Below are positions 4,173 to 43,040 of a DNA stretch of 64,000 nt, one piece after another. The position numbers and the translations under genes are program-made. Below the pieces are notes generated by a model that searched no databases, was not told where the DNA came from, and saw only the letters and a list, made by a program, of their open reading frames with translations. Source of the DNA: Epiperipatus broadwayi. Lineage: Eukaryota > Animalia > Onychophora. The DNA lies in contig JAQFVV010000010.1 of assembly GCA_028023455.1 (NCBI GenBank), positions 3,968,001 through 4,032,000 on the forward strand, read 5' to 3'. Within the stretch, counting starts at the first letter, position 1; every line of letters starts with the position of its first letter.

Positions 4173-4260
4173 CCATTGGTGGCATAGCAAATCCTGGCGG
4201 GATTAATCCTGGATGTAATGGTGGCATTCCCAAAGGAGGCCGATGCGGAGGAAAAGACAT
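4173..4260 (-). CDS. RBM25: First coding exon of an RBM25-like splicing factor (MSFPPHRPPLGMPPLHPGLIPPGFAMPPM+G); whole exon 4173-4278
   Basis: Minus strand reads ttttttatttttag|aattactggagaaacagtATG. 88 coding nt end in ATG G|gtatgt (phase-1 donor at 4172-4171). The peptide closely resembles the start of metazoan RBM25 (human MSFPPHLNRPPMGIPALPPG...). The ORF-track extension to 3970 is intron read-through. Confidence 0.78.
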
Positions 4261-5639
4261 ACTGTTTCTCCAGTAATTCTAAAAATAAAAAATTAAAATT
4301 TGAGAAAAAAAAAAGACTAATTTCAGCATAATGAGTTTAAATTACAATAATGCAATCACTTATTCAGATTCTTTACACAACATTAAACACATATACACAA
4401 TGTTCAATTATTTACACTTGAATGTAACAAATATACATTTATATTGTAAAATAAAATGTATCTAAATTATAGCAAAAAACAGTGATTGTAAAAAAAAAAA
4501 ATCAGCTCAGAAAATGGTCTTGAAAAATTTCAAAAACAATATATTTAGAATACATTAGTCATTATTATTCATAACTTTTGCTAATAAATTTTTCATTTAT
4601 GATATCCCTCCACCACCATGAGTGTAACTACTTTAATTATATAAAGATAATAAGATTGCTGGACAGTGGAAATTATAAGATTTTATCCAGTTAAGAATAA
4701 ATTATTGCATTGTAAAAAGTGTATAAAGGAGTATTTGTTGTATAAAGATAACAATAGATGAATATAGATCTTTGATAGTATATTTTGATATACATGTATA
4801 TATATTTCATTCATAATAACAATTTTAATTAGCTTAATCAAACTATTTCTTTGGCTATTGGTCTTCATTAATAGAAAAAAGTTTTGTAAATCTCTTTCAA
4901 ATACTTAGACAACTTTTACTCCCATTATATTATTCAACCTAACAGTTTAAAAATTTCATGGTGGTTAAGGCCAAGAGCTGAAAAAAAGTCTGGGGATAAA
5001 TTTACTAATTTCATTAATTACTCAAACCTTCTACAGATAGCTTTAAATTGCTATTCAGCAATGAAAGTTTAATTGATGAATAATCTTTATTAATAACATG
5101 GAGCTAAACTGGAAAAAGTCTTTCAATCAAATGAAATTTAAATATTAAAATATATTTATAGTTTTTTGTGAAGTTAATAATGCTAAACATGCATTATCTA
5201 AGAATTGAGATTATATATTTAAAACTCATTAAAATTTATATGCATAGATTAATTCTTTTTAACTGCTATTTTTTTGTTGTTGTTGTTGTTCTGAGAAATG
5301 CATTCATAAACTTTTTTTTTATTAAAAAAAAAAAAAAATTACAAATATATATACAAGGAATAAGCTCCTGAATAGCTAGCTAATCTACAAACAGCACTGC
5401 TCACTAAAATTTTCCATAAAACTGAATAACATTAAAATATATAAAAATTAAATAGAATGAAGTACTGAAAATATGCACTAGAAATTCTACACAATATTTT
5501 TAAAAATGCATCATGAGAAAAAGACAACTGCTAATATTAATTCTACCAACAATATATCAAATGATATAATACTGTACTATAAAATTAAACAGAAATCAAA
5601 TGAAATAGCTGTAACTATGAAATTAATCATTATGCTTTT

Positions 5640-6240
5640 AGCATCTAAATCACATAAACATGTTAATGTAATCTGATATTTTTTTTTGTTATACTTTTAC
5701 CATCAAATAAAAGGAAACAAACTGTCCACATACTTCTGACAGTAAACAATAGATGTATTATACAAATTAAAATGTAAATAAGTATACGACTGAAATAACT
5801 ATAACATACTTTCTGGATTCTAAATGCTAAGGACAGATAATATCAAAATTCAAATAAAATCTGAAAATGAGGTATTGTTAAATAGAAACAATATTTTGAA
5901 GATAGTTGAACAAGAATTTAAATTAGGATTGTAGTTCACAAAGATTGTAGAATCTGTTTTTGCAACTGGTAAACATGTTCATATATTATCCTGAGGATAA
6001 ATAATTTTTATATAAGATAGTTAATGAAATCTAATAGAAAATTCTAGAATAAATCATCAAATTAATTGGAGTTGATGATATAGCTTTTATGTGTGGCAGT
6101 ATACATTCAAACTTATGAGAATAAAAAAAAAACTACTTATCTTCTATTGATGAATAAATTTAAAACATCAACTGAAAAAAATATTATTGTTAAATCACTA
6201 AACATCACATGATCACCATCTCATACTAGCACATAATTGT
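5640..6240 (+). mobile_element. Possible heavily decayed Penelope-like element (thumb/GIY-YIG relic) upstream of the ribozyme
   Basis: The frame from 5820 reads LNAKDR*...GIVK*KQYFEDS*TRI*IRIVVHKDCR, a weak match to the Penelope-type L.n.KD...GVVY...YIGET.R.L..RI.EHK pattern. Penelope-like elements are known to carry terminal hammerheads. Confidence 0.4.
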
Positions 6241-6242
6241 TG

Positions 6243-6508
6243 TAAACAAAAGCAAAACTCCATACAGTAGTGCCACCCTGTGCTAACCAGAGTAATCAAT
6301 AGATGCCAGAAGGCTTGTGCATAAAATCCCTATCTAGTGCCTACTCATCCAATATCCCCACTGATGATGGCCACAAGCCAGAAACTAGTCTGGGGATATT
6401 GGATGAGTAGGCACTAGATAGGGATTTTATGCACAAGCCTTCTGGCATCTATTGATTACTCTGGTTAGCACAGGGTGGCACTACTGTATGGAGTTTTGCT
6501 TTTGTTTA
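6243..6508. repeat. Perfect 118-bp inverted repeat (6243-6360 / 6391-6508) forming the extended stem I of the ribozyme
   Basis: Arms checked base by base with no mismatch; the 30-nt spacer is exactly the hammerhead core. Confidence 0.97.
6355..6396 (+). ncRNA. Type I hammerhead ribozyme, minimal/dimer type
   Basis: tcccca-CTGATGA(6361-6367)-TGGC cacaa GCCA (stem II)-GAAA(6381-6384)-CTAG-TC(6389-6390)-tgggga. All core nucleotides are present. Stem III is the palindrome ACTAGT. Predicted cleavage after 6390. Confidence 0.85.
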
Positions 6509-9299
6509 AAAATATTGATGAATTTTCATAAAAATCGTTAACAAATTAAAAAGAGCCAATTTGTCTAAATAAATTAAATAAAACAAGAATGTAAAATCTA
6601 AATAATAATGTAGTCTAAACTTTTGTAAACAATACCAGTCAATTGCCAGCATAATATATTTTCATAAATAATAGTACAGTATTATATAATGTCAGAAAGA
6701 TTAATATATAGATGTTTGATAACAAATCGCAACAAATTCAGCTGTAACACTTAATATATAAACAAACATCAAACAAAAAGGAATTAATGTTTGTTAAGTA
6801 ATTAATTATACAAGTTGTATAAACAGTTTATTTCAAATATTTAGTTTCTTTGGCTTTAATTCAAAATGGAAACTGATACAAATTATGCATGTAATTGATG
6901 TCATTTTAAAATTTTCTCAAAATCTTTTATATCTTAAGACATTTTTTCTTAAATCAAAACACTGATTTTTATAATTTATATTTTTCTAAACTTCATATTT
7001 TTTAAAAAAATTTTACCACAAAATTATTTTTAATACTAGATAAACTATGTGAACATTCTCATAAATAATTAATAGCACAATACAATGATTTTTATAAATG
7101 TTTCTTTTTTAGTATAAATAAAATTTACAAAACCTCTGACGAATTATTTTTCATTAGATAATTAATTATCATCTTCAAAAAATAAAATAAGATAGAAAGT
7201 AATCTATGCAAGAAATTACCACCTGTATATAGTGAGAAAATGTATTTTCCCCTTATATTTAGAAAAAATTGATTTCTATAATAAATAAATAGTTAATACT
7301 GTAACAGTCAAAAATGCCCAGCTAACACGCAAATCGCTCAAAGGTAATCTGCATGCAGCTCTACATTCCAATGTCATATGATCTAAAACTTTTCCTTTTT
7401 ACATCCCGCGAAACTCAGTAAGATGCGAGAGACTTATGATAGATTAATTACCATTATTGATTGCAATAAAAGATATGTTAGAATAATGAGAAATTACAAT
7501 ATATTTATTTATTTATATACATAATCACCAAACAAATAATAATAGAATTGACAGAACCCTTTGGTAACACAGTCTATTGGTCTTTTACCTGGATTGAATT
7601 CAGTATAACAACACTTAATGATCAATTGTTTTATTTAACTGCCGTAGCTAGTTTGAGACAAAATTCATATGATTAGATATTTATTCACTGCCTCGTTATG
7701 CACAGATAATATACGGTTCTATGCATCTTAATTGTCACTGGGTAGATCCTGACTTGCTGCATAGATTAACTATAAATACCATTACTTATTAATATAACTG
7801 GTCACTACCCAGATTCAAGAACCGTCAATCTGGCTCACAGGCCCAAGGATAAGTTAAACTTCATTTATATAAAATATATTATTAGAAGGCTGACATTAAT
7901 CTAGAGCATTTTAGGCTGCAGCGATTGGAGAATTATATTAAGTGAACTAAGTGTCATGTATGTCAGACGATCTTTAAAATCTGTTTCAATAACATTTGAA
8001 TATATATCAGCAAAGGCCTGTACAGGAATTACGCACCTACCTGGCATTAATGACCAAGACTTAAGAACTAAATGGTAGGAATGGGTATCTATCTGATAAA
8101 TAACAATAATAATCCAAGTTAAAGTGGCAAAAAAACATCCGCTTTACATTTGTTGGCAAACAATCAAAGGATACATAAAACATACGATATATGGTAGAAA
8201 TGTGCATATACCAAATAATACTGCTCAAACTAAGTCACTGACTGCAATTGGCAGAAAAATCATTTGTTTTACACTCGTTTTTGAACCATCGAAAATATAT
8301 ATAAATAAAGCAAACTGAAATAATATCACATGAAATTCAAGACATTGCTTAAAGAAAGTTTAATAATTGGCTTATATGATCCATAAATATCCTCCTCCTT
8401 ATGCCTGCCTATCCTAAACCTAGGGCTTTTTAATTCCAACTATGTTTTTTTTGTAACGATTAAAAATAATCTTTCTCAATACATTCAATCTGTCTATGCA
8501 GCTTTTTATTCTATCCAGACCATTAATCAATATTATTTACATCACCCTTACTATATTTCAAGCTAGTGGAAATAATCTATTAACTCATTTTAAAATAATT
8601 AATTAAAATAATATTAAATAAGCTTTTTAGTGAATGGCAAAAGTTTGCAATGATTAACGAATTGTTTTATTATAAATATTTTCTTTTATGTTATGATGTC
8701 TGAATGTAGCATGTCTAAATAAATTACGCAATCCATTGCCATTCTGATCTCTAAATATATATATTTATGTCAAAAAATCATAATAATCTCTACAAAATTT
8801 CAATATAAATTAAATATAAATACATAGGAGATTAAATATCTAATCTTAATGAAATTAAGTCATAATAGCGTACAATTAAAGTTCATACAAATTTCCCTTT
8901 TCATCTTTAATAGTTCAAGTTATGAATTCAGGTACCTGTAGATTTTTTGGGAAACAGTAGTAGGAACTGTTTTTTTTCTGGACTTTGGTATTCCTGGGAT
9001 TATTGTGGGTGAAATTAAAACTGAAAATTTTACAGCATTTTATTCATTTACATATATATATTGAACTGCCCATTTATTTTATATAATAGTAACAAATAGA
9101 AATATATTATTCTTCCTTCCTTACTAAAACCATCCAATCTCTGAAGGTGCTTGGTTCTCAGGTAGAGTGAACAATATCATTGGCAGCAAGCTACCAATAA
9201 TATAATCACTCAGCTACTAGACAAATACTGACCAAATAAACACTTAATTTATTTTAAGGTAAACCCTTTAAGTGCCAGTTAATCACATAGTAATTAACA

Positions 9300-10260
9300 A
9301 TGTTTACCCGACCAGCAACGAATCTAGTACCTGAGATAACAGCTAGCTCACCGAATTATAGCTGCCTTTTAAAAAACTCCGCACAATCTAAAAAATTCTA
9401 TTTTTAATAATGACGATTTACCATCCGATAAACTTTGACATCTTTAAATAACAAATCATTTTTAAAAAAAATTCTCCCTATTCTTTTCGTTGTAACTTAA
9501 TCATTTCTCAATAATAATTCATTCTTTCCATTCCCATTTTACTAAACATATTACTTCAGCATAAATATATGTATTCATATATCAATATAAATATTTCAAC
9601 GACAGTTTAAATCCTTTTTTGTCTTTTTAAAACAATCGTTTTGTTTTATAATTCAACCACGCACACTCTTTTCATTTAAATAAATGTTTTAATACATTAT
9701 AAATAACTAAAAGTGTACATAACATATTAAATTAAAATTCATACATACATACAATTAATGTCTCTGAATAAAGTTGAACGCAGAAGCCGATATCATTTAT
9801 ATCTTCCAAATACTAATCGGTAAAGGTTGAAAGTTTTAATTTATTTATTTATCACAGTTTTAAAAAAAGCAAGAATTAGAGAATATGAAAATTAAACATT
9901 ACCTAGGATTTGAAATCTGATTTGAAATACGTCCAGCAAAAGTAATTTCCATAGAATGTTATCTCTAACCTCTACACAAATCTTCCCTGAATTCGTGATG
10001 TTATATGGCATTCGTGGCTCTTAGCATAGACACTCCGGTACTCTGTTTACCTTATCCGAACATGGTTTCCCTCTGAACTATCTGCTGATGGTATTACAGA
10101 GAAAGCTCCAGTCAGCTACACGATACGATGAATTTAACAATGCATCATATTGTCTGAATAGCAATTTATATAGTTTTCTTTTGATCGTTTGATTTTATAA
10201 AATATTTTGAAATATTTTAAAAATATAATAATAATGGAATGTTGAAATTTTAAAACCGTC
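9300..10260 (-). promoter_or_regulatory. Second CpG-enriched promoter-like island with minus-strand donor sites (candidate 5'UTR exons for the MSFPP exon)
   Basis: CpG cluster. Minus donors TCG|GTGAGC (9351), TAG|GTAATG (9902) and AAG|GTAAAC (10050). Confidence 0.45.
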
Positions 10261-10893
10261 TTAACAATAACCAAGTTTGTTTATATCCAGCATTTATTAT
10301 CTCATGAAATCATTGTACTTTTACTTCCCTCTGATTGGGCTTCTATTTTATTTTTTATTCAAAATTTTTACACACTCACACATTTAATTCTTTTATTATA
10401 AAACAAAGCGAATTTTTTCTTTATTAGTTTTATTATGAACTAATCAAAAGTAATATGGAATCATTTTTATTTCACACTCTTTTTTTAAAAAAAATAAAGG
10501 AAAAAAATCTTACCCTCCTTTTAAAATCGTTTATTATTTATTTTTCTTTAACAATAAATCCCCCTACCCTACTCCTTAGTTTTTTTTAATTTTCTTTTCC
10601 TTCAACTTTTAACTTTTATTTTAACTTAATTTCCCCACTTTATTTTTTTTTTAAACAAAATTTATTAAATATTATTACTTTCAAAGAATATTATACATTC
10701 GGTCCCAATGTACCCCGGTACAATATAAATTAAAAATTGAAACGAATTCAAAACTTACTTTTCAGAAAATTATTTTTTTTTAAACCAGGACAGACTAATG
10801 GCTACATTGTTTAAAAAAAAATTTTTTCACTTTAGTTTAGTTTGAGACTGATTTGGCAATTGACAAGTAATATGAACGTAAGAAACAGGCAAT

Positions 10894-11163
10894 TTATGCT
10901 TTTATTGCTGAGAATGAACACTTTTTGAAATATTTCAAAGAGATTTCTACAGATTCATCCCATGCAGAACGTTTGAGGTTACAACCATTTGTCGATGTAA
11001 GCTTCCTGAAAGAATGTTTAATTTTTAAATGCCGAGCAAGGCACTTGCAGAAAAAACCTCTACATTTGGGTATTGCAGCAAAATGATTACACTTTGCTTT
11101 TTCATTATTACTACATTTAATGAAGTCTTGCCAGGCAGATGTTTTTGATTTCTTCATCATCAC
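10894..11163 (-). mobile_element. BED zinc-finger relic, probably from an hAT-type transposase
   Basis: KTSAWQDF...KAKCNHF...LARHLKIKH matches the BED pattern W..F...A.C..C...L.RHL...H with the second Cys lost. Confidence 0.55.
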
Positions 11164-11380
11164 AAAAAAATTTAAAAAATTAAATATATGAAAAGCGGTT
11201 TAACTGCAAAAGTATCTGTCAAAAAAAAAAATGACATGTATAATTGTGAACATGAGAGCTCGAATCTACTCAGTCAAGAAGGAGTCTAGAGTCAATAAAT
11301 GATAACATTACAGAGATATATAAGAAAGGACTTCTTGACTTTCATTTTCTATTATATATATATATATTGCAAATGAAATG

Positions 11381-12499
11381 TAGTTGTGTACTCTTAGCGT
11401 GTTGAAACTGCATGAGGGCGTAATTTCTATGTAAGCAAACAGAATTATAATGTTACCAGGCCGTTGTTTTTTTCCCAACATTAAAGTGCTTTTTTGATTT
11501 ACAATAAAATCATGAATAATGAAATTTATCTAAAAGAAATAAAAAATAAATTGGATAAACCTTTTTTTTTTAAATATTTTTTTACCTAAAATGAAATTTG
11601 TATTTTAGCAAAAATAAAAACAAATAAAAACAATATCGTGGCTGCACAAATCAAATTTTAACAAGAATAAAGAGAAATAATTTCCCCAAAACAACATCAT
11701 GGTCACGCAAATATCATTTTGTTATTTTAACAAGAATAAAAAAAAAGAATTTATTCAAAACAACATCGTGGCCAAAAATAAAACCGGTATTTTTTATTGT
11801 TCTCGCAATTTTTCTCATGCAAATGTGAATTTTAGCATGATTTCATAAAAATCATGCTTACACTCCTCTTTGACGATTAAAGTGTCATCCTTGACTAGAG
11901 AAGCGGAGCAAAGTTTCCACAATTTTTATTACTTCATACTACATCATTGGATATGGAAAATAATAACTTGGGCATGCAAATTTGAAGACTTTTGACAGAC
12001 TCAATTACAGTCACCCTCATAAACGACCGTAGTGAAATTTAAAATGGGATTGTTCATATAAACTGCGTAACACAAAGTTCTCCATAAGCGGCAGCAGCCG
12101 TGGTGGCAGAATAAACATCCTACTTCTGTGCTGTAAATACTGTAGCGAAATGTTAATAATAGAATTGTTCGTATAAACAGTGGCAGAATAATACGTCCTA
12201 TTTTTGTGCTGTAGCATAGAAATAGATACTATAGCGAAATTTAAAATGTGATTGTTCGTATAAACTGCGTAACTCAAAGTTCACCGTAAGCAGCGGTGTC
12301 TGCTGCAGCAGAATAAACGTCCTATTTCGTGCTGTAGCATAGAAATGGGTGCCGCAGACCAGTAAACAGACTTTCTATGCTTAAACATTGAAAAAAAACG
12401 TTATATAGCGGCACGGCCACTTAAACGGCATATTTCTGTGCATTTGCATAAAAATTACACCCTCAAGCGGTTTCCAACACGCTAAGAATAAACAATCTG
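11381..12499 (+). mobile_element. Non-autonomous TIR element (family copy 1)
   Basis: About 70-bp imperfect TIRs (tagttgtgtactcttagcgtgttg... versus the reverse complement of 12430-12499). Candidate TSD aaatg at 11376-11380 and 12500-12504. Internal tandem subrepeats at 11630-11775 and 12025-12350. Confidence 0.75.
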
Positions 12500-13645
12500 A
12501 AATGTATGAAAATAAATATTTTTCTAAATTAAAATAATACACATCTTTATTGCTGACGATCTCAAATTATGAAGAAACTTTATTTTGCTAGTGCATGATG
12601 GTTGCATATATTTATATAAGTGTGTGTAAGACTGTAAGTATTGATTATGGAAGTTAGTAATTCAAACTGGGGAAATCTCGGGATTAAGAAAATTTCCCGG
12701 ATAAATCCTACACCAAAATCAGCTAAGATCCCAGAAGACAGTCCCTAAACAAAAGGTAACATAGCTATATCTGACAATCTTCTATGAAGCTTCCATTGAT
12801 ATTGGTACTTCTATTTGATTCAGTGGCAGCACATGATAGTCTTTTCTTGCTGAATGATAGATGGTCTATTCCTCAAAGTTATAGACAATTTTAAAACTTA
12901 GGCAGCTATACAATCTACATATAATCTGGACACAATGATCAATGAGATGTTTACATTATTTTATGGCTTCTTCTCAGCACTTCAATATTGGACTTAAGCT
13001 TGCACTCAGTCAACTTGACCAAAGTGGAATGGATGATGTGCTTCCATGATACAACAGCGATCGCAATATTTTAAAACGACTTTGATGATCAAGAGAATAA
13101 GTGAAAGAACCAAAACAAAGAACAAAAGCATAATAATAGATATTTTGAGAGATCCTTTTTAAAGTTCACCAAGCTGCCTTATTTATAAAATCAGTTTTCA
13201 TGGTTTGATTTCACATATTCATCCATTGATTGTAGATTAGTCCTAAACTTTGCTGTGGTCCATGGCTTACTGACCAATTACAGACTACAAAAATTAAGTT
13301 TACAAAATAATAAAATTAATATTTTAACTAGACAACATACAATATGAATCTCATAATTAGTTGGGTCTGCTTATCAATAAATTAATTAATTTATAAAAAT
13401 AATTTTATTTCCACCTTCACCTAATTAGCAACATAATTTTATAATTCATAATTAATAAAATATTTTATAAACTTTGTTTAAATTACTTAAAATTAATTTA
13501 GAATTAATAAGGCCTAATATATTTTATCTATGCACATACTTATAACAGTATATATATTTTTAGTTTAGCAAAAATGTAGCTTTCGTTTACAAGTTACTAA
13601 TAAATTTTTAAATGGTATATGTGAAGCACATATATATCGCTTCAA

Positions 13646-14145
13646 NNNNNNNNNNNNNNNNNNNNNNNNNNNNNNNNNNNNNNNNNNNNNNNNNNNNNNN
13701 NNNNNNNNNNNNNNNNNNNNNNNNNNNNNNNNNNNNNNNNNNNNNNNNNNNNNNNNNNNNNNNNNNNNNNNNNNNNNNNNNNNNNNNNNNNNNNNNNNNN
13801 NNNNNNNNNNNNNNNNNNNNNNNNNNNNNNNNNNNNNNNNNNNNNNNNNNNNNNNNNNNNNNNNNNNNNNNNNNNNNNNNNNNNNNNNNNNNNNNNNNNN
13901 NNNNNNNNNNNNNNNNNNNNNNNNNNNNNNNNNNNNNNNNNNNNNNNNNNNNNNNNNNNNNNNNNNNNNNNNNNNNNNNNNNNNNNNNNNNNNNNNNNNN
14001 NNNNNNNNNNNNNNNNNNNNNNNNNNNNNNNNNNNNNNNNNNNNNNNNNNNNNNNNNNNNNNNNNNNNNNNNNNNNNNNNNNNNNNNNNNNNNNNNNNNN
14101 NNNNNNNNNNNNNNNNNNNNNNNNNNNNNNNNNNNNNNNNNNNNN
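13646..14145. other. Scaffold gap (500 N)
   Basis: Run of exactly 500 N; the round size suggests a placeholder. Confidence 0.99.
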
Positions 14146-15043
14146 ATTCCAAAATATTGAATGATGATTGAAATAATATAATTTCCCATTAGAGTAAAAC
14201 ATTAGCATACTAAAACTAATTTAATAAGAGATATATTTAAAATAAGTTTTGCCACATGAAATAAAATAATTAGAGGTGAAACTTTAAAAACTAATGATAG
14301 GTTTAAAGTATTAATTCTGTGCTTAGGCGTTTTCAAAGAACGTTATTTAGTTGAAAGCTTAAGAGAAAATCATAAATTTAATGATAATTAGTTTACAGTC
14401 ATTTACCAAATAAATAAAAGTTACATTCTGATTACAATTAAGATTTAGAACAGGAATGAAGTGAGGAAAATTAAGAGTTTATTCTTCAGCAAAACAGATT
14501 ACCTTTATTATTTATGGCGGCCATTTAAGATAACTACACGAAGTTTGGACACGAAGGCACAATATTAATAAAATAATGGTAGGCATCTTCCAATATTCTT
14601 TTATAATTAAGCACAACAGTTTTCAAGCAGTGATGGCATAGCAGGGAGGCAGGACAGAGGCGATTTAAGATCAGGGAGGCAAATTCCTTTTACTCACAGT
14701 CCATTTTATTACCACTCTCTACACAAATACCAGAGAGAAGAGTGATTTGAACTCCTTTTGCACATTCCTAGAACTTCTGCTCCTCCTATACTTGAAATTT
14801 AGCAATATTGGAAGATGTAAACAATACGTTCCAGAAAGCAGATTATTTAAACATATTTTTGACATTTTAAAATTGTAATAATATTTTTTTAGAATTTCTG
14901 GCATTGCTTTAGCTCTACATTAATTGTATTTATTTTCATATCTGTAATACATATACGCACATATACAATTATTTAAATGAAGGAAATTTACAAGCTTGAA
15001 AATAAAATATACTTAAACTAAAATAATAATTTAACTGGTTACA
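14146..15043 (-). repeat. Probable 3' LTR of the Gypsy element, running into the gap
   Basis: 14146-14898 is a close direct repeat of 21989-22737. The minus strand shows a PPT-like ttaagaaaagg followed by TGTAACC starting at 15043. Confidence 0.6.
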
Positions 15044-15472: not shown

Positions 15473-18025
15473 CTATTCTTTTCCTGGGTTAGGTTGTATA
15501 TATGGCTTTAATTGGCGCGCATTGTATATGCCTTTAATTACTTTTCCTTCTCTTAAAAGGAAAGCATTTTCCCCACATTTCTTCTTAATTATATAAGGAC
15601 CTTTATATAAAGGGAAAAAATTATGGAACTCTTGGCATGTGACATTACTGCGCTTAGGAACTTTAAGCCACACTTGATCTCCTTCACAAAATCTATGATG
15701 AGGAATACGCCCCTTCCTAATTCTAATTTTAACCATATGAGCTAACCTTGATCGAGCACGTTGCTGGTCACATTTTTGATCAATACAAACATCCTCATTT
15801 GGTAAGGATTTGAAAATCTCCGAGCATGGTTTGCCAAAGTGAAGACGCCTTGGTGTAAAACCTGTTGATTCATTAACTGATTGGTTAATAAAATCTGTTA
15901 TCTTCTTGGTATTGTTGACCCAACCTCTATAATTCTCAAAAGTATAGGTGCGGAATAGTCAGTTTATCTCTTTCATTACATGCTCACATGGGTTAGATTG
16001 GGGGTTTCGAACCGATGTGAGACGATGTGTTAGTCCTTGTCGAAGAATCCAGGCTCTCCATTCCTTGGATGTGAATGCAGAACCATGGTCTGATAGCAAA
16101 ATTTCAGGTTTACCTACTTCAGGGAATTGTTTGTTTTGTAAAACCCGAATCACATTTCTGAAATCCGCTCGTGGTACCGGATATGCTTGAACATATTTAG
16201 AGAAAACATCATAAGTAACTAACAGATACTGGAAGCGTCTAAATCTGGGCAAAGGACCATAGTGATCTATAGCCAATAATTCATTTGGCTTGGAAGCAAC
16301 AATAGGAATGACTGTCCCTGCATACGATTTCGTAAGGTGCTTTGATTTTGCACATAAGGAACACCCTCTTAATATGGTCAAAATTTGAGCATACATTCCG
16401 GGCCAATAAAACCTTCGTCTCACTGCCTCTTCGGTTTTTCTGGGTCCATAATGTCCAAGACTTTGATGAGTTGCATTTATAATTTGTTTCCTCATGCGGT
16501 GTGGTACCACAATTTTCCATGGATTATCTTCTTTGTTTGTCCTTATATGTAGTTTTCCTTCCCTTATTTGATACCGACTTATCCTTCTGGCACTCAGTTT
16601 GGAAACATTTTCTTCTCTTTTCCTTAACACTGCACGAATGATAATTCCATATTGGAGATCCCTTTCTTGCCAATATCTGATATTTTTTAGATCAGACTCA
16701 ACGGATATCTCATTAGCTGTGATCATTACCTTAGCAGTTCGATCGACAAGTTCCGGATTCTGAAGTGACATTGGTATGGGATTCCGGCTTAATATATCTG
16801 CCACTATATTTTCATGACCTGGACAATAAACTATACTATAATTAAATTTTTGTAAAATGAGGCTCCACATTATGAGCCTTTCATTTGTAAGGAAACTTTT
16901 ATTTAAGAATTCCAAACATTTATGATCCGTGACTATGATAACTTCAGATTCCAAGAGAAATTGCCGAAACTTTTGGCACACCCAAACAATGGCAAGTGTT
17001 TCTTGTTCGGTCGTAGTATAATTATTCTCTGCTCCTTTTAATGTTCTGCTACAAAAATATAAAACCCCATGTTTTCCTTCCTCATCCACTTGAAACAGTA
17101 AAGCTCCCAAACCTTTCTTATTGTCAGTTTGGACATAGAATGGATGATTAAAGTTAGGATGATGAAGTATCACAGTGTCAAGAAACTTCCTCTTAATATT
17201 AGAAAACTCTTGGTCATGTACGTTGCTCCAATTCCACTTTTGCCCTTTCCGTAGTAACGCTATCATGTTGGATGTTTCTTGAGAAAAACCAGGATAAAAC
17301 CTGTGGTAGAAATTACATAAACCCAAGAAAGATCGAATATGTTTGCGAGTAGTTGGGCATGGAAAATCCTCTATTGCCTTAATTTTATCCGGGTGTGCTC
17401 GTATTCCTTGCTCACCAATTAGATGGCCCAAGAAAGCTATTTCCCTGAGACCAAACAAACTCTTTTTTAAATTTATGGAAATGTTCTTTTTTTTTACACT
17501 CCTTAAAAAACATTTCTAAATATTTTAAATGTTCCAATGGATTCTTAGATGCAATCACGATGTCATCAACATATGAAACCAAATGTTTTTGCAAGTCTTC
17601 TGACAAAACTTGGCTTAGACATCTCACAAGTCCGGCTCCACTATTTATAAGTCCAAATGGCACTCTTTTGAACACATGAGTTTGCCCATTATACCGGAAT
17701 GCTGTATATTTACGGTCTTGTGGGTCTAAAACCATTTGCCAATAACTAGAAGTAAGATCTACAGTAGAAAACAGGCATTTCCTGCTAACTTTACAAATAA
17801 TTATTGTGCTGAAGGAGGTATGTCCCGCTCCGGAATAGTCATACTATTCAACTTCCGGGCATCTAAGCACAATCGAAGAGTACCATTTTTCTTTTTAACA
17901 ACTACCAATGGATTATTATATGGTGAAGGGCTTCTCTCAATGATATTCCACTCAACCATTTGACGGATTTGTTTTTCAACTTCCTCGTGGTACTGGAACG
18001 GAATTGGATAGGTTCGTGATTGCAC
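15473..18025 (-). mobile_element. Gypsy/Ty3 pol (RT-RNase H-integrase), pseudogenised
   Basis: YPIP...PLVVVKKK...RLCLDARKLN, VDLTSSYWQ, YVDD, RNase H TD...EQETLAIVW...TDHK, integrase HHCC, DDE (IDHYG, SDHGSAF, SNPCE) and GPY. Domain order RT-RH-INT. Stops at about 17801 and 15959-15961 plus frameshifts. Confidence 0.95.
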
Positions 18026-29850: not shown

Positions 29851-30329
29851 TTGACTTATCAATCTGGTCAGGTTGTTGTGTCTGGAAGATTACTCATTAA
29901 AGCAGTAGAAATTATAATATCAGTAATGATGATTAAGCAGTAGGCAGTGTAGTATTAAAAGTAAGTATTATAAATCTTTTTTTTTTTTTTTTTAATGTAG
30001 ATACATGATATGTCTTAACTTTATTTGATGTAAACTCTACAAGATCTGAATGTAGGACAGCAATAAATTTTAAGATCATGCTCTCATCTTGCACAAGAAG
30101 TTTTAGTAGAATAGGTAAATGGGTACAAGGTTTTTTTGGAAGGACAGATCATTTAGTAAAAGGAAAATACATAGTGTTAAATTTTTAAAGACTAATAATG
30201 TTAAAACATGGCACTAGGGCTCATTTTACCAGTGCCTATGCTTCTCAACATTAGATTCAAACATAGAAAGTTTATTTTTTGCTAAATATTTTTATTACAG
30301 CAATATGATTAAAAGAGTGAATTTTTTTC

Positions 30330-32480
30330 CTCTCAACACTTCAATGTACATGTTCATACAAATAGTACACTTTGACCCAAAGTTGTTGGATATACATATA
30401 AATTGAAATGATGTACTATTATTGAATTTTTGCTCAACATATGGATTGATTATCATATATGCTTTGTTTTAAAAAGTCATTATAAAGAAACATGGATGCA
30501 TCCAAGCTCAAAACATTTAATAGATTATATTATAATTAGTATGCAGACTACATCAAAAGTATATATTATGCAAGTACTTAAAGTGCAGATTGCTGGATGG
30601 ATCATAGTTTAGTATTGTTGCATTAAAAATTATCATATTCCAATCATATTCGCACCATAAAATGGATATTTAGGAGTAGCTATTTCATGCTCAATTTTAA
30701 CAGCTATTAAACACTAAAATTTCTAATTTGGCATATTAAAATTGCCATGTTACTATGGCACAGAATTTTCTTAAGCAGTGTATTAGATTCTGGAATTCAT
30801 GAAAAAGAAATGTCTTTTCTACCTATGATATTATTATTAGTGACATGATTTGTGGCATTTTTTTCTTGGCAGAGTATTAAACATGGAGGTTTATAATAAA
30901 TAGAGATTTAAAGACAGAAGTTCAACATTTGACAAGAAGAGTTAAAAATGATAGATGGCTTAACATTATAAAGGATATAGACATTCATAGATTGTAATCA
31001 TTTTTGCACTGAAAAGCAACATATGAATCTGAGAAACAGTATCATAAATATATTATATTCAGCAATGGCACTCTTATATGGTAATGGTATTTCAAACTGA
31101 TGGAAAAAATATTTTGATCATTATTTAAATAATGATAACAAGAATTGAGATACAACCTTTAATGATATATTCATGTTATCTGCTCATTTAGATTGGCATA
31201 AAGATACCCTGCTTAGTGAAGTCAAAACCTTTTTATAATCTTAAAAATGGAAAGTTGGTCTTGATGAACCTGAAGGGAGTTTTAAAATATGGTGGTGATA
31301 CATTAGCTTTAAAATATTTGAATTTTTTAGGAATATATGAATTGATAAAATTGTATTGCTTTATCATAAAGATATCTCCTTTGTTCCAATTTTTTAAAAT
31401 AAAAGAAGTAACAACATTGCATGGAATATTGTTATTGTCCACTACAACAAAACTACTTCCAAAAGTTTTGTTTAATAAGTTACTTCCTGTTTTTGATGAA
31501 TGGTTACCAGAGAGACTCTCAATATTGTTTTAGAGAATCAAGAAGCACAAATAGGTATGATTTTGTTACTAGATAAATGCAAAAATAGTGTCAGAAGTAT
31601 ATTGCTTTGCCCAAGGCATTAGACTCACTTAATTGAGAAGTTCTGTGGCATTGCTTGGGATTAGATGGTTATCCATCAAAAATTGAATCAATTAAAACAA
31701 AAACTTCATCTTAAATTCTGGATGTAAGGGTTGCTGATGATTATGCCATTTTTGCCAATAACAAACGATAATCTACAAAATAAACTTAATATTTTGAATA
31801 CAACATATAAGTGTGGTTTAGTAATTGATGCTGAAAAAAATCAAGTTCTTTATCATCAGTGATAGAAGAAAAGTCTTAATACACTTTTAGCTTGTATGTT
31901 TATCAACTTGAGAATGGAAACCAACATAAATATTTGTTAATTTTTATGTAAAAAGATGGAATTTTCATGTTGAGGTGTAGTGCAGACTAATGTGATGCCA
32001 CTATTTATCAAGTTAAAGGATAGGATTTCATCACAGGAAATAACTATTACAACTAAATTCGCTGTATATAGAACTGTTATTTCATCTAATTTATTATATG
32101 GAAGTGAGATTTGAACAACCTTTTGATATATCATAAAGACATTAGAAAAATTTCATTTAAAGATCTTCATAAATTTAAAAAAGTATGTTTTTCACAGTTC
32201 TGGATGACAGTCCATTGTTGTAAAATCACTTCTATTGGATTGGACATGTGAAGTGAATGAAGAATGCAATATTTAAAAAAAAAAAAAAAAAGTTTTTTGA
32301 ACATGGTTTTTGTGGGAGAAGTAGACCCTGTTTATTTTGTAAAAGATTTTCTCAAAAATATTTTAAAGAAATGCAAAGTTGATTGTTTTCATTGGGAAGA
32401 TGTGGCAGAGAATAATAAATATTGGACAACTACAATTAGGCACAGTGTTGAAATATTTAAAGCAAAAGTTTCCTGCAGAA
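30330..32480 (+). mobile_element. Decayed RTE-BovB-like LINE
   Basis: TWMHPSSKHLIDYII (endonuclease), ADD relic at about 31733 and C-terminal WEDVAENNKYWTTTI...FK, as in RTE/BovB ORFs. Confidence 0.7.
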
Positions 32481-33259
32481 GTTAAAAATAATATCACATA
32501 TGTAACAAAAAAAAAAAGAAGATAACAAACCAGTTTGTTCTATACTTGGATTTATTTGTGATTAACAGATTCTGATTATAATATTGATATATTAGTTTTT
32601 TTTTATTTATGAAATTGGAACAATACTTGATTGAAACTGTCTGCTGATGATGGCGACATTATTCTTTATTATCAATGATCTCTCATTTATAGTAGATCGT
32701 CCCCCCCCCCCCCACCAAGCTTTTACAAAAAATTTAAATGTTATCTTAAAATTTTTTATTATTTTTAATTTACTAGTTCTTAAAAATAAACTTGAGATTG
32801 CTTGGAAATTAGCTTTAATTGAAAGTCTCCCTTCTAAATAATCTACATGTTAAATGTTTGTTTTCATATTAATTTTGAGCTTCTAACTTTTTTCTTCATA
32901 ATATTTTAGCTGCATATTTAAAATAAATGTTTCATATTTATTTTATTTTGTATTGCATTCATAATTAGAAGTAAGAATTAATATATTAGCATTATTGACT
33001 GACTTAAAGTTTATCACCAATATTTAAATAATATGCAAACTTAATGTATATATAGATTTGTATGCATATAAATATATAAAACATTATTTACTCTTGTAAA
33101 GATAATTAACTTTGGATATCTTTTAAGAATTTTATTTTATCATTCTATACGTTTTTTTTCTTTTAATTCTAAAGATAGGGAACTACCAGTTTCCTATAAA
33201 ATTTTCATTTCTACTCATTATTATTTCATTGCAGTATAAAGGTTTTTCCAAATTTAATC

Positions 33260-36200
33260 CAGCTTCAGCCAGTTCACAACTTATTGAACTCTGCTTATCA
33301 TTCCTGCAAATATTCCAATGTTATCAATTCTCTTTACACACAGTCTCTTTCTAGATCTTTTTCAATGTCTTAGGGTGCAGTTTAAAACTTCCATTGCTCA
33401 CCTATTCTTATCTTCTCTAGTGATATATCTAACCCTTTTTTATTTCAACCTCTAAATTTTTTTTAATGTCAGTGATATCTATGTTTTCACCCATGTGCTT
33501 CATTTTCAATTTGCCTTTGCTATTTTCAACAATCTGTCAATATTTTGTTGTGTCATCCAAAATTTCTTTTTCGTTCCTTTTCAAACATTTAGATATATTT
33601 CTTTTTATTGTTCAATTATTTCTAACAAATACTTTCAAATTTTCTTTTGTGATTAATTTCATCCTTTTCCTTTTGTATTTATAAACTGACCAAGGTATTT
33701 GTTATTATTAATTAGTTTATTAAATCATTTTTTGAAAGCTACAGCACACGACCTTAGTCCTTTTGAGCATTTATTTTTAGTCTTACTTTCATCTAATAGA
33801 TATTGTAATACTTGTTGAATCTATAAAGAACTTATATTTATTTATATTTTTTTAGTTTCTCATTTAATTCACAAAGCATTTCCTGTGAAACTGTAAAAAG
33901 ATTTAGGAGTGGAATCACCCTGCCATATATGCTTATTATTATTAATCTTTTTTGATGCTATCATGTAGTGTAAACATTGCGTTCATATTTTAATAAATAT
34001 TCTTCAGAATTAAATAATATTATGAATGTATATCTTGATGATTCAAAGCTTTAATCACTATCAAAATGATTTTGATAAATCTACACATCCAAAGTATAGT
34101 TGCAACTTATATTCATTGGTTCTTTCTATAACTTCATTTAATACTTGAATGTGGTCTGCGCTCTTATATTTTTTACGTCTAGGTTTTTTTTTTTTTGATT
34201 GTTCTTCATATGTAATTATAATGATCTTAATACAGATCAGGTATAGAACTAACAGAAGATTGGTAAATCTGTTTGTATTTTTTTTTTTTTCAGCTTTTTT
34301 AAATATCAACCATTGTTACAATCATATAGTATATCTTTATTATTTAAATATGTGGTATATAGTTTTGTCAGCAATTTTTTTTATTTCTTCATCTGCTTGT
34401 TTTAAAGTATCTATAATAATTCCATTATATTTTTGAACTTTTCCATTCTTCATAGATTTAATTGCATATATTATTTACAATACTCATCATTTCAAAAGGT
34501 GTTCTTATTATTGTAGGAGTTACTTTATTTTTTTTACTCTCTATTATTATATATCCCTTGACATAACAAACAATTCCATATATTTCATGATGCTATTTAT
34601 TTTGTTTTCAATTATGCTATCTTTTTTATTGCTGAAGTAATTTTTCTTCCACTATTAAGATGAATTTTTTTTTTTTTAGGGTTTTTATATATCCTTTATT
34701 GAAAATTATTCATAGTTATGTATTTTATTATATCATCATTAATTTTTTTTTGTACATTTTTAATGGATCATTACACACACACCCCATATATTGTCTTGTC
34801 TTTGAAAGTTTTCTGAATTGCAGGGTTTTTTAAACCAGTTTTATCTATGCTGCTATTATTAGGTAGTGTTCTGTTCTGTTGTGTTGGCTGCTTGACAGCG
34901 CTATTTCTAGCTAAATTGCTAGAAATATGCCGTTTCCATGGCCGCAGCCAAGCAGATAGCCTTCTTTCTACAATAAAACAAAGAAAGAGTCTGTTTACTC
35001 GACTGCCAGATACCGCGGCGGCTTTTTTTCTATGCTAAAAGCACAGAAAAATACCTTCATTGGCTGCTGTAGTTGCTTGTGTTACGCACTTTATCATTAT
35101 GCTGGGTTGTCTATTTTCGCTACAATATCATGTGAGAGGGTGTGTTGACTGCATCGTGTTTAAATAATTGAACTTTTCAGGTCCAACTTTTTTTTTTTCA
35201 TGTGAACTGACCTACTGGTACCTTCTAACAGTTTTAACACTGTCGTCACTGTTCCATCAGGACTGTGTAACCATCACAAATTGGAATCTAGGGTGCGACA
35301 CAGCACTCTATCGAAGATCCGGAGGAAAGTAGCGTATCCACAGACATTGTCCGAGACAAGTAAGATGGCTGCTTTGAACTCTGAAAATTGGCAATTGTCA
35401 GACACCGGAGTCGACTTTCATTTTAATAGTTTGTTATAATTATTAACTTTAGTGGGTAAATTGCAATCTAATTTACTTTATTACCCCAAAACGCAGTGTC
35501 TGATTAATTACTATCCAAAAAAGGGTAAAATTTACTTTTATTTTTTATTACAAAAAGTGTACCGTAACTTTTCTGATCCACACACACAGCCACACCCAAA
35601 GAAGCCCGTCTCTCTGAATAATTCTCTGCTATATTTACTATTATTTGTTATTAAAAAAGTAACATAACTCTTTATGGATATCCACACACACATACAAAAA
35701 AAATGCCACTCTCTGATTAGTTACTGTCCCAAAAAGGTCAAAGTCAGCTTTTATTGTAAAATTTTGTTTGAATTTGTTAAATTTTGTTGAAAAGTTGTAA
35801 TATAATTGACTTTGATTTCAAAACACAGTGTCTGATTAATTAAAGTCTTAAAAAGACTAAAATTTACTCTTATTTTTTAGTTAAAAAGGAACGTAACTTT
35901 TTATATCCACACACACACAAAAAAGCCATTCTCTGATTAATTACTGTCCAAAAAAAGTCAGCTTACATTTTTGTATTTTGTTTGAATTTTTTAATTTTAT
36001 GAAAATCGTAATATAATTTACTTTTATTTCCTATTCCAAAAATAAAGTCAATAGTTCTATAGAATCGCTGGCCTGGGAACGTTATATTATCTGTGTTTTT
36101 GCTTAGCATCAATGCCATCAAGCAGCTGACACGGTAGAACAGAACACTACTTTACTATTTGTCTTACGATTTCATTTAACTTTGGATCATGTTTGAAATC

Positions 36201-36900
36201 TGCTAAAATTGTAAAACAATTTAAAATTTATATCAATCTTAATAATTGTTTGTTTTAAAAGATTTTATAGTTTTGCATTAGCACAATATCTCACTAATCA
36301 TTGATTCTATTAACTGTACATATATTCTATTTGTCAAAATATCTGATTCTGCCACATTTTCATTTGGATGCTTCCATGTTTATTTCCACTTAATTATTTT
36401 TCTTAGAAAAAAATAGAAGGAATTCATAATATATTTGTTTTTCTTTGAAAATAACATAATTCTGTGGTCTCTTATTTCTTTGTCCATATCCAAATTTATC
36501 CACTGCAATTTCAATTGATTTTCAATTTTAGCATTAAAGTCTCTTGTGACAATTTAAAAATATTATTTCTGTCTGATATCACTTATTCTATATATCTATA
36601 TAAAAGTCCTTTATCACAGTGTGAGCTTTTGATGAATTTGAATCTTCCATTAAGCTGAATAATTAATCTTTCTGCTCTCTCAGATATATTATCAATCTTA
36701 GTATTGTTCTTCCATCTTTGCTTATGATAAATTCCATTTCACTTATATTTCCAATATTTATGTCTCTTTTGTAATATACATGCTGTCCGCTTTTCAAATC
36801 ATTTGTTTTTCTTTTAACTTCATAAAGTTTAGCAATATCTCGATTAATATTGGTTAGTTTCTTTTAATTCATGCAATGTACGCAGTTAAAGTAAAGACAA
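33260..36900 (-). mobile_element. Decayed RTE-like LINE, interrupted by TIR copy 2
   Basis: ADHIQVLNEVIERTNEYKLQLYFGCVDLSKSF at 34061-34160; outer limits approximate. Confidence 0.6.
34858..36154 (-). mobile_element. Non-autonomous TIR element (family copy 2)
   Basis: Inverted ends gtagtgttctgttct...gctgcttga. Shares ataacgtt.cc.ggcc, aaacggcatatttct and agtaaacagact with copies 1 and 3. Internal tandem subrepeats at 35430-36040. Confidence 0.7.
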
Positions 36901-39469
36901 ACATCAAATGGCAGCTTAGATTTGTAATCAAGGAATTCTTAAAATTTTTGCATTTAGATAACAACTGCTACTTTAGCTAATAGTTTTCAGTATTTTGGAA
37001 ATAAGAAACATAATTTAATTTTTTAAAATCTTGGTTACAAATATATATAAAAGATAATTAATACTCAAACACACTTCAAGGAAACACTGATCAATGTTTT
37101 TGTTAAAAGATATAGTGGTATTATTTTGATTTTAAATTCAGAAGTGAAAAACAGTAAACTCCATGTTAATTGAATCATATTGATAAATGGATTATCATGT
37201 TAATGTTTTCACAGTTATAACAATTGTATCAGCTAAAATATCTGGAGTGAATGATAGAAAATTTATCTTGCTCTTTTTTAAAAAAAAATCTCGAAGGGGA
37301 ATCAAAGAGGTTTTTTGCAAAATTATTCTTGTGCTTTCTCTCTCTCTATATATATATGGAGACTATATTTATTTCAATCTACCATTAGACTTTTTTTTTT
37401 TCCTAATAATTTTCAAAATTTGCAATTGTAATGGATAGTGTTATATATCCAAATTTCAAAATAGAAAAATTTCCTGCTACTTTTGATTTTGGGAAAAATT
37501 TGGAATCAAAAAAATTTAACTGTAGTATTACTAATGATAAGTAAGCCATTGAAATTTTGTTCAATTAACTCTCCAAATCAGGCATTGATATAGCCATCTT
37601 AAGCCTCAGAAAAAAAAAATTGAAAATTCTTAATGATGATGGCCAGTATAATTGCAATTTGACAATGGAGACTGATAAATGTTTTGATGATTGGTTTAAT
37701 GTCTTCACTTAGCTACTGATATTCTAAATTTTTATTCCATGTTGGATCAATATTCTGACAAATTTTACTTTTTGGCAATTTTGAGTATGATTTAAAAGTA
37801 TTGTATTTTTTTCCTTTGTTAAGCATTCAGTCTCATTAGATAATTTGTTTAGAGGCTTGGATTTGAGAAAGCTCTTTCAATTATTCATATAATTTTAATT
37901 TTTTTGTTTACCAGTTGCTGAGTCCACAATTTTTGTGATAATCAAACTATTTTGTTTGCCTTTTCTGTAGTTGTTGTTTGTTTGTTTCACTTTTTTGTTG
38001 TTGTTGTTGTTGTTCATTTATTTATATATAATTTTATTCATGCAAGTTTATTAAATTTTAAGTGATTTTAAATGGTTTAACTGGAAACTGTTTGTGCAAG
38101 ATAAATTTTGTAATGGAATTTTAATATACTTCTGTCAAATGAATTTTCATCATATTTTATACATGTTAGAAATCTATGACAGTGACATATTTTAGAATTG
38201 TTAAGTGGTGTATATAAACTAAGGATGTTGGCAGATCAAATTTCAAACAGTATCGTAAATTTTTAATGATATGCATGAGAGGGCGGCATACTTTTTAAAC
38301 ATTTATTTTTAAAAAAGGTTATTAATTAGAAATAAAATATTTTAATTGATTGTAAAAGTTGCTTCTTTTAAAATGAATGAATTTTTATATTTTCTTGATT
38401 CAAAGTTTCTTTTTTTTTACAACTTTTTTTTCATTTACAAAATAATATTGGAATGAGCGAATGTTAATGGACTAATAATAATTACAAAAAATATCCAAAT
38501 ACTAAAAAATTAAAATATATAAAAAGTATAATAAATAAACACTTGCTAGGCACAAAAATGAAAAAAATAATTGTTTTTTTTTTTCCAACTATAATTGGGG
38601 TTTTTATATTTAACTTGAAAGGAAAGTATGGCATATTCAAAAATTAATGAACTTAATATTTAGTTTTTACAACAAGTGATTGAATTAATTAATTTCTGGA
38701 TACCCATACTTGGACGAAACCATTATTTTTTGACTTTTTAGTGCATATTTGATATATATATTTAAGTAATATCAACAAATACATTTTACTTATAAATGAA
38801 TAGGCATGTAATTTGCATTTTTTCGATTTTTATTTGAATAATAGTTATTCATTTACAAAATATTTATTAAAAAAATGTCTTTAAAGAATTTTGTGTCAAA
38901 GATTTTGATTATTTAATTTTAGTTTAACATCTTGTTTGAAAAGGTGGGGAGGGGGCAATAATGAAGTGAATTTTAAATTAAGGCAGTTTTATAAAGTGTG
39001 TAATGTGTTTTGAGAAATTACATTGTAAAAATAACTGTGCTTGTAGATATTACATAGTTATAGTCTAAAAAAAAATTAAAATATTAATGTTATATATTAG
39101 GCTGCAGAAAGGATTTTGCTATTAACTGAAATGAAATCTTCTGTTTCCTCTTTGAGATCTTAAAGGAACTGAGTAGGGCAAATTCCTACTCTCTACTTGA
39201 GATATTCTTGTCATTATAGGTATTATTACTTTAAGGTTTATTAATATAGTAATGGAGCATAGATGGGCGTTCACCAAAATGCATCATTTATTTCGGAGTT
39301 TAAAATCAAGAAACATCAGTCTTTTGTATCAGTTTCTGATAATTCTTAATTGAAATATTATTTGAGTTTTTTTGAAAGCAGAATGAATATGTGTGAATAA
39401 ACTTATATATGTATATAGATATTTGCAACCATGATAAAGTAAATTCGTAGCATTGTTCCTAGGAGACCA

Positions 39470-42150
39470 TAAAGTCACCAACTAAAATAATAGTTGATGG
39501 CCGAAAAGAGAAGATGCTAATAAGTCGCCTAATTATGGACCCAAACTGCCATTTGATAACAAGCTTTTAGTTAGCAACTTATAATTGCAGATCACTTTCA
39601 AGTGAAGAATGTGGGCATGAATTAGAACTAATCATTATTATATATGACACTTTGAGAAGTTAAAAGAAAAAGTAAAGAGACAAATAATTTAAAAAGTGGT
39701 CATGTACTTTACTACAAAAACACAAATATTGGAAGCACAAATTGAGAGGGAGTTATTACAAATAAAAAGTAGAACAACATTGGAGAGAATGATTGATTTA
39801 TGACATAAGTGGCAAAATTATTTGTTCAAATTAATGGAAGATAGCAAATGCACAATTCAGATTTATGTTTCAACAAGTTTTCATTTTAATGAAGTAGAGA
39901 ATTTTTATATGAATATACAAAATGGTTTTGATTAGACTAAACACTATTTTACAATTGTTATGGGAGACTTTAATGCTAGAATTGGTAAACAATTAAAAGA
40001 TGGAAGTTCTGAGAGTAAATTGGTTATGGTGATAGAATTGAGAGGAGACTTAGACTTGTGAATTTTCAGAAAAAGGAAAACTATAATTTATAGTACAAAT
40101 TATTTCTTTGAAAAAAAAATGCTTAATGGAAATTGGACATGGAAGCATCCAAATGAAAGTATAGTAGAATCTGATTATATTTTGACTGACAAAAATATAT
40201 ATATTTCAACATTGTAATATTTTTAATAGATTCAACACAAGAAGTGGTCATTGATTAGTGAAGTATAAGATACATGTTAATTTAAAAGTAGTGATATGAA
40301 ATCATTAAGGAAAACAATATTAACAGTTACTATTCCTAATCATCAGAATCATTCTAATGAATTTAAATTAAAAGTTGCAAATCATTTTAAAATATTAACA
40401 GATTTTAAAAAAATGTTCAGACTTCACTGAAATGAATAAGAAGAATAAGATTGGTACAAGAAGCAATTTACAAATTAATTTTCTATTGAAGAAAAATTTT
40501 AAAAATGAGCTATTAAGAAGAATTGAATATCTAGAATTGTGCAAAAATGATATGAAAAAGAATTAATAATAATGCAAAAAAAAAAAAAAAAAAATACAAT
40601 TGTGAATTGGCAAAGAAAGCTATAGAAGAGAATAAAAGTCTCAAAAATGTAGAACAACTCCTTGATTTGAAAAGAAAATTATTTCTGAAGTAAGAAGAAA
40701 AAATGAAACTATTTTTAAAAAGCTGATATCATGGTATGTTTGGAAAATTTTTATAAAGAATTATATAATAATGCAGAACAAAGTATTTCCTACATTTATT
40801 ACATCTGAATTATTCAGCATTTTAAATGAAGATATAAAATGTCCAATTAAATTTATAAAGAAGGAAAAAGCTCCAGGAAATGATGAATTGTAATTGATAT
40901 CTTAAAAAAATCAGATGAAAAAAATAGAAAAATTATTGGCAAAATTATATAGCAAAAATCAGAATGATTGGAAGAATGCAGTAGTAACATTTGATATTTA
41001 AGAAAGGTAATGAAAAAGATATTAGAAATTACAGATTTGTCTATCTTTTATCAGTTTTAAATAAGACAGCAAACTTTTGCATTTTAATCAACCAGAAGAA
41101 TAAATTGGATTTCAAAATTGTTTTAGCAGATTTAGGGCAGTTGTAGAAAGGAACAATGAATACTAGTTGCAGTTATGCTTTGGATTTGTAGATTATGGTG
41201 ATGCATTTGATTCTATGAACATTTTTACAGTGATTTAAACATTGTATCATGAAAATGTAGATCCAGGATATTGTCATATTCTGATGAATATTTGTAATGA
41301 TCAGAATACACGGTGATATTAAGAAGATTAACATTGAGAAACATGTAGGACAGGATGTTTTTTTAACAATTTTACAAGAAATATTTTGTCAATTAAAATG
41401 GGAAGCTAAGGGAAGAAAAGTAAATGGAAATTATTTAAGTCATCTAGATTTTGGTGATGACGTGGATATTTTTGCAAATAATGCTCCGGAAATGTGCAAG
41501 AGTTATCAGGTGAAAGTAAGAAAGTAGAACTAAGGATAAATATTAAAAAAGGTTAAAGTAATATTCAGTGGAATTTCTCAAAAAATAAAAAGATTGTTAA
41601 TGATGAATTAGAATAAGTTATTAACTATAAATATCTTGGTCAGATTATTATTGAAGATTGAAACATAACAGATAAAATTTAACATAGAAATAAACTTGGA
41701 TGAATTGCTTTTGATATAAATAATTAATATTAAAACGGAAAAATGTGTCTATGTGTTCAAAAAATATTTTTAATAAATGTGTTTTTCAGTTTTTATTTTT
41801 GAATCTAAGACTTGGACACCTAACAGAAGCACTGTTCAGAGACTTCAGATCATTCAATGAAGTATGGAGTGATATATGCTAGGAGTAACAAGATGAGATC
41901 CAGTCTAAAATACATGAATGAGAAAACAAACAAATATTACTGATATTTTTGAAAGAATTATGAAACCGAAATAGGACTAAACTAGAACTTTCTGGTTGAA
42001 GAGATTATAAGAGATGGATAGTCGATGTCTTAAACAGAATTCTAAGAGATTGAAAAATATTTATAATCAGACTATATGTAAGATGAATGGATGAAATAAG
42101 GAAATTTGTAGTTTTGTTATGTAGAAGAGAAACTGAATCTGAATTACACT
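39470..42150 (+). mobile_element. Decayed RTE-like LINE (EN-RT)
   Basis: VMGDFNARIG, WTWKHPN, DYILT, FVDY..AFDS and HLDFGDDV relics. Confidence 0.8.
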
Positions 42151-42926
42151 TTGAGAGACCGTCATCATATAGTGAAATTGAAAATGGGTGAAAATGATGA
42201 CAATATGTAAAACACAAATTATATGTGACAAAACAATGCATGGGATTTTTTTTGAGATAATTAGTAATTAATGTGATGAATGTATTGTGGAATTAATATT
42301 AGTTTTGTTGTATCTATGTCTGTCAGTTTTCTTTCTAATCAATGTAGTTACTCATTCTTTTATTGATATATACATACATGGATCAAGATTAAGCTATATA
42401 GAGATATAACTTTATGTTAAAAATACTTTTTAATAAAATATAAACCAAAAGTATAAACTATTTAAATAGATATTTTAGAGTTTATGTACATCATATTAGC
42501 AGTATTTAAAGAAAATCGAACAAAATATCATTTATGACTTACTTGATATTGGACAAATGTGACTGAATTAAATAAAATTATGAATGGGTTTACAAATATA
42601 ATTATATAGATGCAATCCTGCTATCTGAATTGTAATGTAATTTTAAAAAGATTCTAGCTTGTAGTTTTAGCAAAGTAATTAAATTGTCAAGAAGTTATAG
42701 TATGAACAATAATAAATATAGATGATGATGTAATGATGATCTCAGGAGGAACACAGGAAGGCAATAGAGTAGAAAGGTGATCTGTAACATAAAAAGCAAA
42801 TAGAGTAGAAAGATAGGCTGTAAGAATATAGAACAACCTCAGGCACAGTATATGTGTTGAAAGAAATTGCATATAAACATATATTTGTACAAATATATAT
42901 ATAAAAATATGTTTTTATTTATTTAG

Positions 42927-43040
42927 ATGATGCCTCCCGGTGTGCCTATGCCTTTGCCAGATGCACGAGGACCTCCACCTAAAATGATGAATCGTAAAAT
43001 GTACCACCCTAGTCAAATAATGCATAAGCAACTCAGGACT
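42927..43040 (+). CDS. RBM25: 114-nt internal exon MMPPGVPMPLPDARGPPPKMMNRKMYHPSQIMHKQLRT, probable next RBM25-like exon
   Basis: tttttatttatttag|ATG...ACT|gtaagt; 38 codons, open, phase 0/0, compatible with exon 28710-28756; GC-rich and Pro/Met-rich in AT-rich surroundings. The gene identity is inferred from context. Confidence 0.6.

Follow-up and report, generated by a model that had tools for sequence, protein, structure and literature searches.

In the Drosophila gene mod(mdg4), 5′ exons that end in a GT donor lie on one strand and exons entered at an AG acceptor lie on the other, within tens of kb. Its common 5′ exons are spliced to a large set of alternative 3′ exons, each driven from promoters of their own, and both its chimeric mRNAs and its DNA arrangement are proven. 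Conserved trans-splicing events apart from mod(mdg4) are rare (Kong et al., PMC4667647). In other described cases, the broken genes eri-6/7 of C. elegans and BGIBMGA008294::SIBSBM001135 of Bombyx (PMC4667647), a gene that is cis-spliced elsewhere comes from two separately transcribed pieces, with proof by reverse-transcription polymerase chain reaction or from specific alleles. Here, we analyzed 64,000 nt of the genome of the onychophoran Epiperipatus broadwayi (assembly GCA_028023455.1, contig JAQFVV010000010.1, positions 3,968,001 to 4,032,000 of the forward strand; the whole stretch is called the window, and positions are counted from its first letter), in which the first coding exon of a putative RBM25-like gene lies on the minus strand and the next two coding exons lie on the plus strand, across an assembly gap. 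Most likely the animal itself does not have this opposite-strand arrangement; the contig to the left of the gap was probably joined in the wrong orientation, or was also misplaced.

The locus shares features with each of the described systems. As in mod(mdg4), a GT-donor 5′ exon on one strand faces AG-acceptor exons on the other within tens of kb, but only one acceptor is present here, and the arrangement is known from the assembly sequence alone. As in the broken genes, a product that is cis-spliced elsewhere would come from two separately transcribed pieces, whereas the split here may not exist in the animal. The locus also has the traits of a contig orientation error: an N gap lies in the breakpoint interval, a contig ends in a repeat and the gene becomes collinear once one contig is reversed.

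The window contains three coding exons of the putative gene.
4173 to 4278, minus strand: exon 1, with an 18-nt tail of the 5′ untranslated region (5′ UTR), the ATG at 4260-4258, and 29 codons plus 1 base
28710 to 28756, plus strand: exon 2, 47 nt, in phase 1 at its start and phase 0 at its end; the acceptor is ttttag and the donor GTGAGT
42927 to 43040, plus strand: exon 3, 114 nt and 38 codons, in phase 0 at both ends

Exon 1 codes for MSFPPHRPPLGMPPLHPGLIPPGFAMPPM and the first base of a Gly codon, and it ends on the minus strand at a phase-1 donor (G/GTATGT, with the GT at 4172-4171). Upstream of exon 1 on the same strand are a polypyrimidine tract and an acceptor-like tttttag (AG at 4280-4279), and a 5′ UTR exon is therefore expected farther right on the minus strand. 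Exon 2 completes the Gly codon and codes for (G)APMMPISIGLMPGAP between the boundaries ttttag/GT and CCA/GTGAGT, while exon 3 codes for MMPPGVPMPLPDARGPPPKMMNRKMYHPSQIMHKQLRT between tatttag/ATG and ACT/GTAAGT. When the three exons are spliced in silico, they form a single open frame that reads ...AMPPMG-APMMPISIGLMPGAP-MMPPGVPMPLPD..., and every splice site is canonical. Intron 2 measures 14.2 kb (28757-42926), and intron 3 exceeds 21 kb.

Direct reading of the sequence bears out the exon structure proposed in the initial annotation, including the minus-strand ATG exon with a phase-1 donor at 4173, the plus-strand exon entered in phase 1 at 28710 and the peptide that results from the join. 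The end of exon 2 had to be corrected to 28756, in phase 0, since an exon 2 that ended one base later, after 28757 and in phase 1, would put a stop codon in frame within exon 3. A canonical GT donor and AG acceptor with matching phase are present across exons 1 and 2, and cis-splicing predicts the same. Phases would agree in one case out of three by themselves; what makes the observation weighty is the order of the peptides, which appears to follow that of human RBM25. The human protein has the N-terminus MSFPPHLNRPP and a segment, PMIPVPMSIMAPAP, that resembles exon 2. The gene described here begins with MSFPPH and continues with a stretch rich in Pro and Met, which it would share with the human 5′ end.

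We determined the copy number of each exon by searching the window with the three exon peptides, using tblastn tuned for sensitivity (PAM30, word size 2; positions 3043-3090 excluded). Exons 1, 2 and 3 were each matched once (E = 8e-31, 2e-14 and 5e-41, respectively), and the runner-up matches were no better than E = 0.04. A regular-expression search of all six frames of the whole window found a single MSFPP. Neither approach found a second copy of exon 1, 2 or 3 in the window, which carries the 5′ end of one gene only. These searches agree with two absences claimed earlier: no MSFPP exon lies on the plus strand upstream of 28710 (one MSFPP in six frames and a single tblastn match), and no GAPMM-type exon lies on the minus strand in 1-4170 (the exon 2 peptide was matched once, outside the excluded positions). 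Separately, no inverted repeats of at least 120 bp flank exon 1 within the window, and on this ground a recent inverted duplication within the window was rejected.

The region between exon 1 and exon 2 contains an assembly gap and transposon sequence.
13646 to 14145: assembly gap of exactly 500 N, a fixed-size scaffolder placeholder
14146 to 14898, plus strand: transposon repeat, whose start is the first base of the right-hand contig
15476 to 18225, minus strand: gypsy-type retrotransposon pol, with reverse transcriptase, RNase H, integrase zinc finger, integrase core and Tf2-type SH3

This gap is the only one in the window. It falls between exon 1 and exon 2 in non-coding sequence, and the open reading frames (ORFs) listed across it are runs of X. 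Because the gap is a fixed-size placeholder, how the two contigs are ordered and oriented was inferred by the scaffolder and not read from sequence. Common scaffolders insert 500 N by default, and Hi-C scaffolding often leaves contigs in the wrong orientation. The right-hand contig starts in a repeat that has a direct copy (91% identical) 7.8 kb away at 21989-22737, and its break looks like one caused by the repeat. The join therefore rests on scaffolding, with no sequence read across the gap. The left flank of the gap (13300-13645) is unique AT-rich sequence, and the gypsy-type pol is situated between the gap and exon 2. The window as a whole is AT-rich (approximately 23-38% GC in 2-kb bins) and full of transposons.

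The minus-strand gypsy-type pol lies between the direct repeats at 14146-14898 and 21989-22737, which are 91% alike and could be its pair of long terminal repeats (LTRs). Alternatively, they could be fragments of a long interspersed nuclear element (LINE) with a reverse transcriptase tail that continues at 22.7-23.9 kb. Neither a clear TG...CA nor a primer-binding site was seen at the termini of these repeats.

We infer that exons 1 to 3 follow one another at the 5′ end of a single RBM25-like gene, ordinary and cis-spliced, whose very long introns are filled with transposons. The left contig (window positions 1-13645, extending left of the window) would carry the promoter, the 5′ UTR exon and exon 1; once it is reversed, exon 1 would precede exon 2 on the plus strand, making the gene collinear. 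The corrected order would be the promoter, the 5′ UTR exon, exon 1, the remaining left contig, the gap, a 14.6 kb transposon-rich intron, exon 2 and exon 3. Collinearity requires a right breakpoint at 4.3-28.7 kb and a left breakpoint left of 4173. The 500-N gap falls inside the required right-breakpoint interval, and the left-breakpoint interval extends off the window. Single exons that join in frame at canonical sites are the pattern of one cis-spliced gene. After reversal of the left contig, intron 1 would have to span several tens of kb, a length that fits this gene because its intron 2 spans 14.2 kb and its intron 3 more than 21 kb. The absence of flanking inverted repeats of at least 120 bp also counts for a reversed contig, as such repeats would be expected had the region recently been duplicated in inverted orientation or been inverted through recombination.

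The initial annotation had argued that a simple reversal at the gap fits poorly, since strand skew looks similar on both of its sides. That objection fails, because skew in the window follows transposon content, and similar skew on either side of the gap is uninformative on contig orientation. Within intron 2 alone (28757-42926), whose plus-strand orientation is not in dispute, 2-kb bins range from -0.157 to +0.151 in AT skew and from -0.085 to +0.315 in GC skew. The first 4 kb to the right of the gap is transposon sequence, consisting of the repeat and then the minus-strand gypsy-type pol. Strand skew was accordingly rejected as a marker of contig orientation.

We used sequence words to ask where else exon 1 is found. 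Seven words were sampled from the 120 bases at 4173-4292 and looked up in the contigs of RNA-labelled runs, where the kinds of run are marked as guesses. The share of the seven words that was present reached 0.71 for each of organism labels A, B and C, 0.43 for label D and 0.29 for label E. In DNA runs of organism A (X1-X4), approximately 0.63 of the words sampled from 3646-13645 were present. The matches in RNA-labelled runs suggest that exon 1 is expressed and that close relatives conserve it, and its occurrence under five organism labels is compatible with normal use of the exon in a gene that is essential and conserved. The presence of the words argues against a decaying orphan exon; it cannot tell apart trans-splicing and cis-splicing on a misoriented contig. 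In metagenome contigs, a degenerate junction pattern (AMPPMGAPMMP) and a degenerate exon 1 pattern each had 0 matches, and exact-product look-ups, made for the exon 1 ORF and for two transposon ORFs, gave nothing on record.

Several other arrangements would place these exons on opposite strands. Exon 1 could belong to a second RBM25-like gene, a head-to-head paralog or partial duplicate that continues on the minus strand to the left of the window, with the exon 1 of the plus-strand gene lying in the gap or lost. Because this gene has long introns (14 kb in one case, more than 21 kb in another), an exon 2 on the minus strand could be farther off than the 4.2 kb seen to the left of exon 1, and the true length of the gap is not fixed by the 500-N placeholder. 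However, exons 1, 2 and 3 are present in exactly one copy each, complementary and not redundant, and no inverted repeat marks an inverted duplication. Two coincidences would be needed, the missing exon 1 of one gene together with the out-of-window exon 2 of the other, and paralogy is therefore an unlikely explanation. The earlier ranking, which held misassembly or a paralog to be commoner explanations than the other options, stands. A real inversion without trans-splicing, either fixed or polymorphic in the sequenced animal, would have left exon 1 as an orphan, and the plus-strand transcript would start at ATG ATG in exon 2 or in exon 3. Both exons offer in-frame start codons (ATGATGCCA in exon 2 and ATGATGCCT in exon 3), and a protein without approximately 33 N-terminal residues could be made in cis. 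An orphan exon should decay and should not turn up in assembled RNA, whereas exon 1 retains an intact ATG, an open frame, a donor and an upstream acceptor, and its words are found in the contigs of RNA runs under the five organism labels. The location of the gap inside the needed breakpoint interval would also be a coincidence, and we regard an inversion of this kind as very improbable.

A real inversion could also have been healed by opposite-strand trans-splicing, in which the 5′ splice site of a minus-strand pre-mRNA that stops after exon 1 is joined to the exon 2 acceptor of a separate plus-strand pre-mRNA. The donor and acceptor are canonical and phase-matched, exon 1 appears to be expressed and conserved, and the healing of broken genes by trans-splicing is documented (Kong et al., PMC4667647). 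All of this evidence, however, is equally expected if the left contig is reversed: matched phase, canonical sites, single complementary exons and an expressed exon 1 are predicted under either mechanism. Trans-splicing starts from a low prior, conserved events other than mod(mdg4) are rare (PMC4667647), and the gap is placed where an artefactual breakpoint would be; we regard this reading, too, as very improbable. A contig reversed during assembly and a real inversion differ in their priors and in the role of the gap, because the former requires a gap between the exons, while for the latter the gap is a coincidence. Other assembly problems would take up the remaining probability.

Three considerations weigh against a misoriented left contig. 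The proposed error is drawn from the assembled sequence of the window, and its second contig boundary would lie outside the window. The left contig itself runs off the window, and if it extends over hundreds of kb and carries other genes, a simple reversal becomes implausible. Moreover, a gap between the two exons could have arisen by chance in a region so rich in repeats.

If the arrangement is an artefact, as is likely, it matters for the assembly only: one contig should be reversed, and the RBM25 gene model has probably been annotated without its true start. If the arrangement is true, opposite-strand trans-splicing would here be keeping a housekeeping gene alive, a clean natural example that would add to the few proven cases in arthropods other than mod(mdg4).

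The name RBM25-like is putative; it is based on the three Pro/Met-rich exons, and none of the tools confirmed the family. Under this name the gene would be a conserved, essential splicing-factor gene. Human RBM25 has an RRM, an Arg/Glu-rich region and a PWI domain, none of which was found in the window: six-frame regular expressions detected no RRM-like (RNP-type) or PWI motif and no E/R run of at least 8 residues outside the transposon ORFs. The RRM exon must sit more than 21 kb to the right of exon 3, expected beyond 64000, so that its absence concerns the window and not the gene; the PWI and Arg/Glu-rich parts probably also lie outside the window. A phmmer search of exon 3 against 1.84 billion representatives returned 0 matches, as did a word-index search of the joined 83 amino acids, whose length filter admits only proteins of 46-145 amino acids, and a PDB search with short exon queries. 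The ESM Atlas returned only low-scoring, unrelated Pro-rich clusters. These sequence searches are uninformative on the family because the exons are too short and low in complexity.

Other features of the window were noted during the analysis. A 121-bp stretch at 6369-6489, within an element initially described as a hairpin/hammerhead (6243-6508), has an 88% identical inverted copy 52 kb away at 58128-58247, and a search of the whole window against Rfam yielded no match at gathering score. On the minus strand at 10897-11199, a 101-amino acid open frame has a Cys/His spacing reminiscent of a BED-type zinc finger, with no Pfam match at E < 0.01. In overlapping open frames at 12004-12374, also on the minus strand, a peptide motif (LRSLYEQSHFKF...) recurs, as would be seen in a short tandem repeat that contains an open frame. 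Farther right, two tandem non-LTR retrotransposon-like copies, approximately 80% identical, occupy 48.6-51.6 kb and 52.1-55.8 kb (window positions 48597-55825) and show a strong positive GC skew of up to +0.6. Another LINE-like element has more distant copies at 39.6-41.3 kb and 61.4-63.0 kb.

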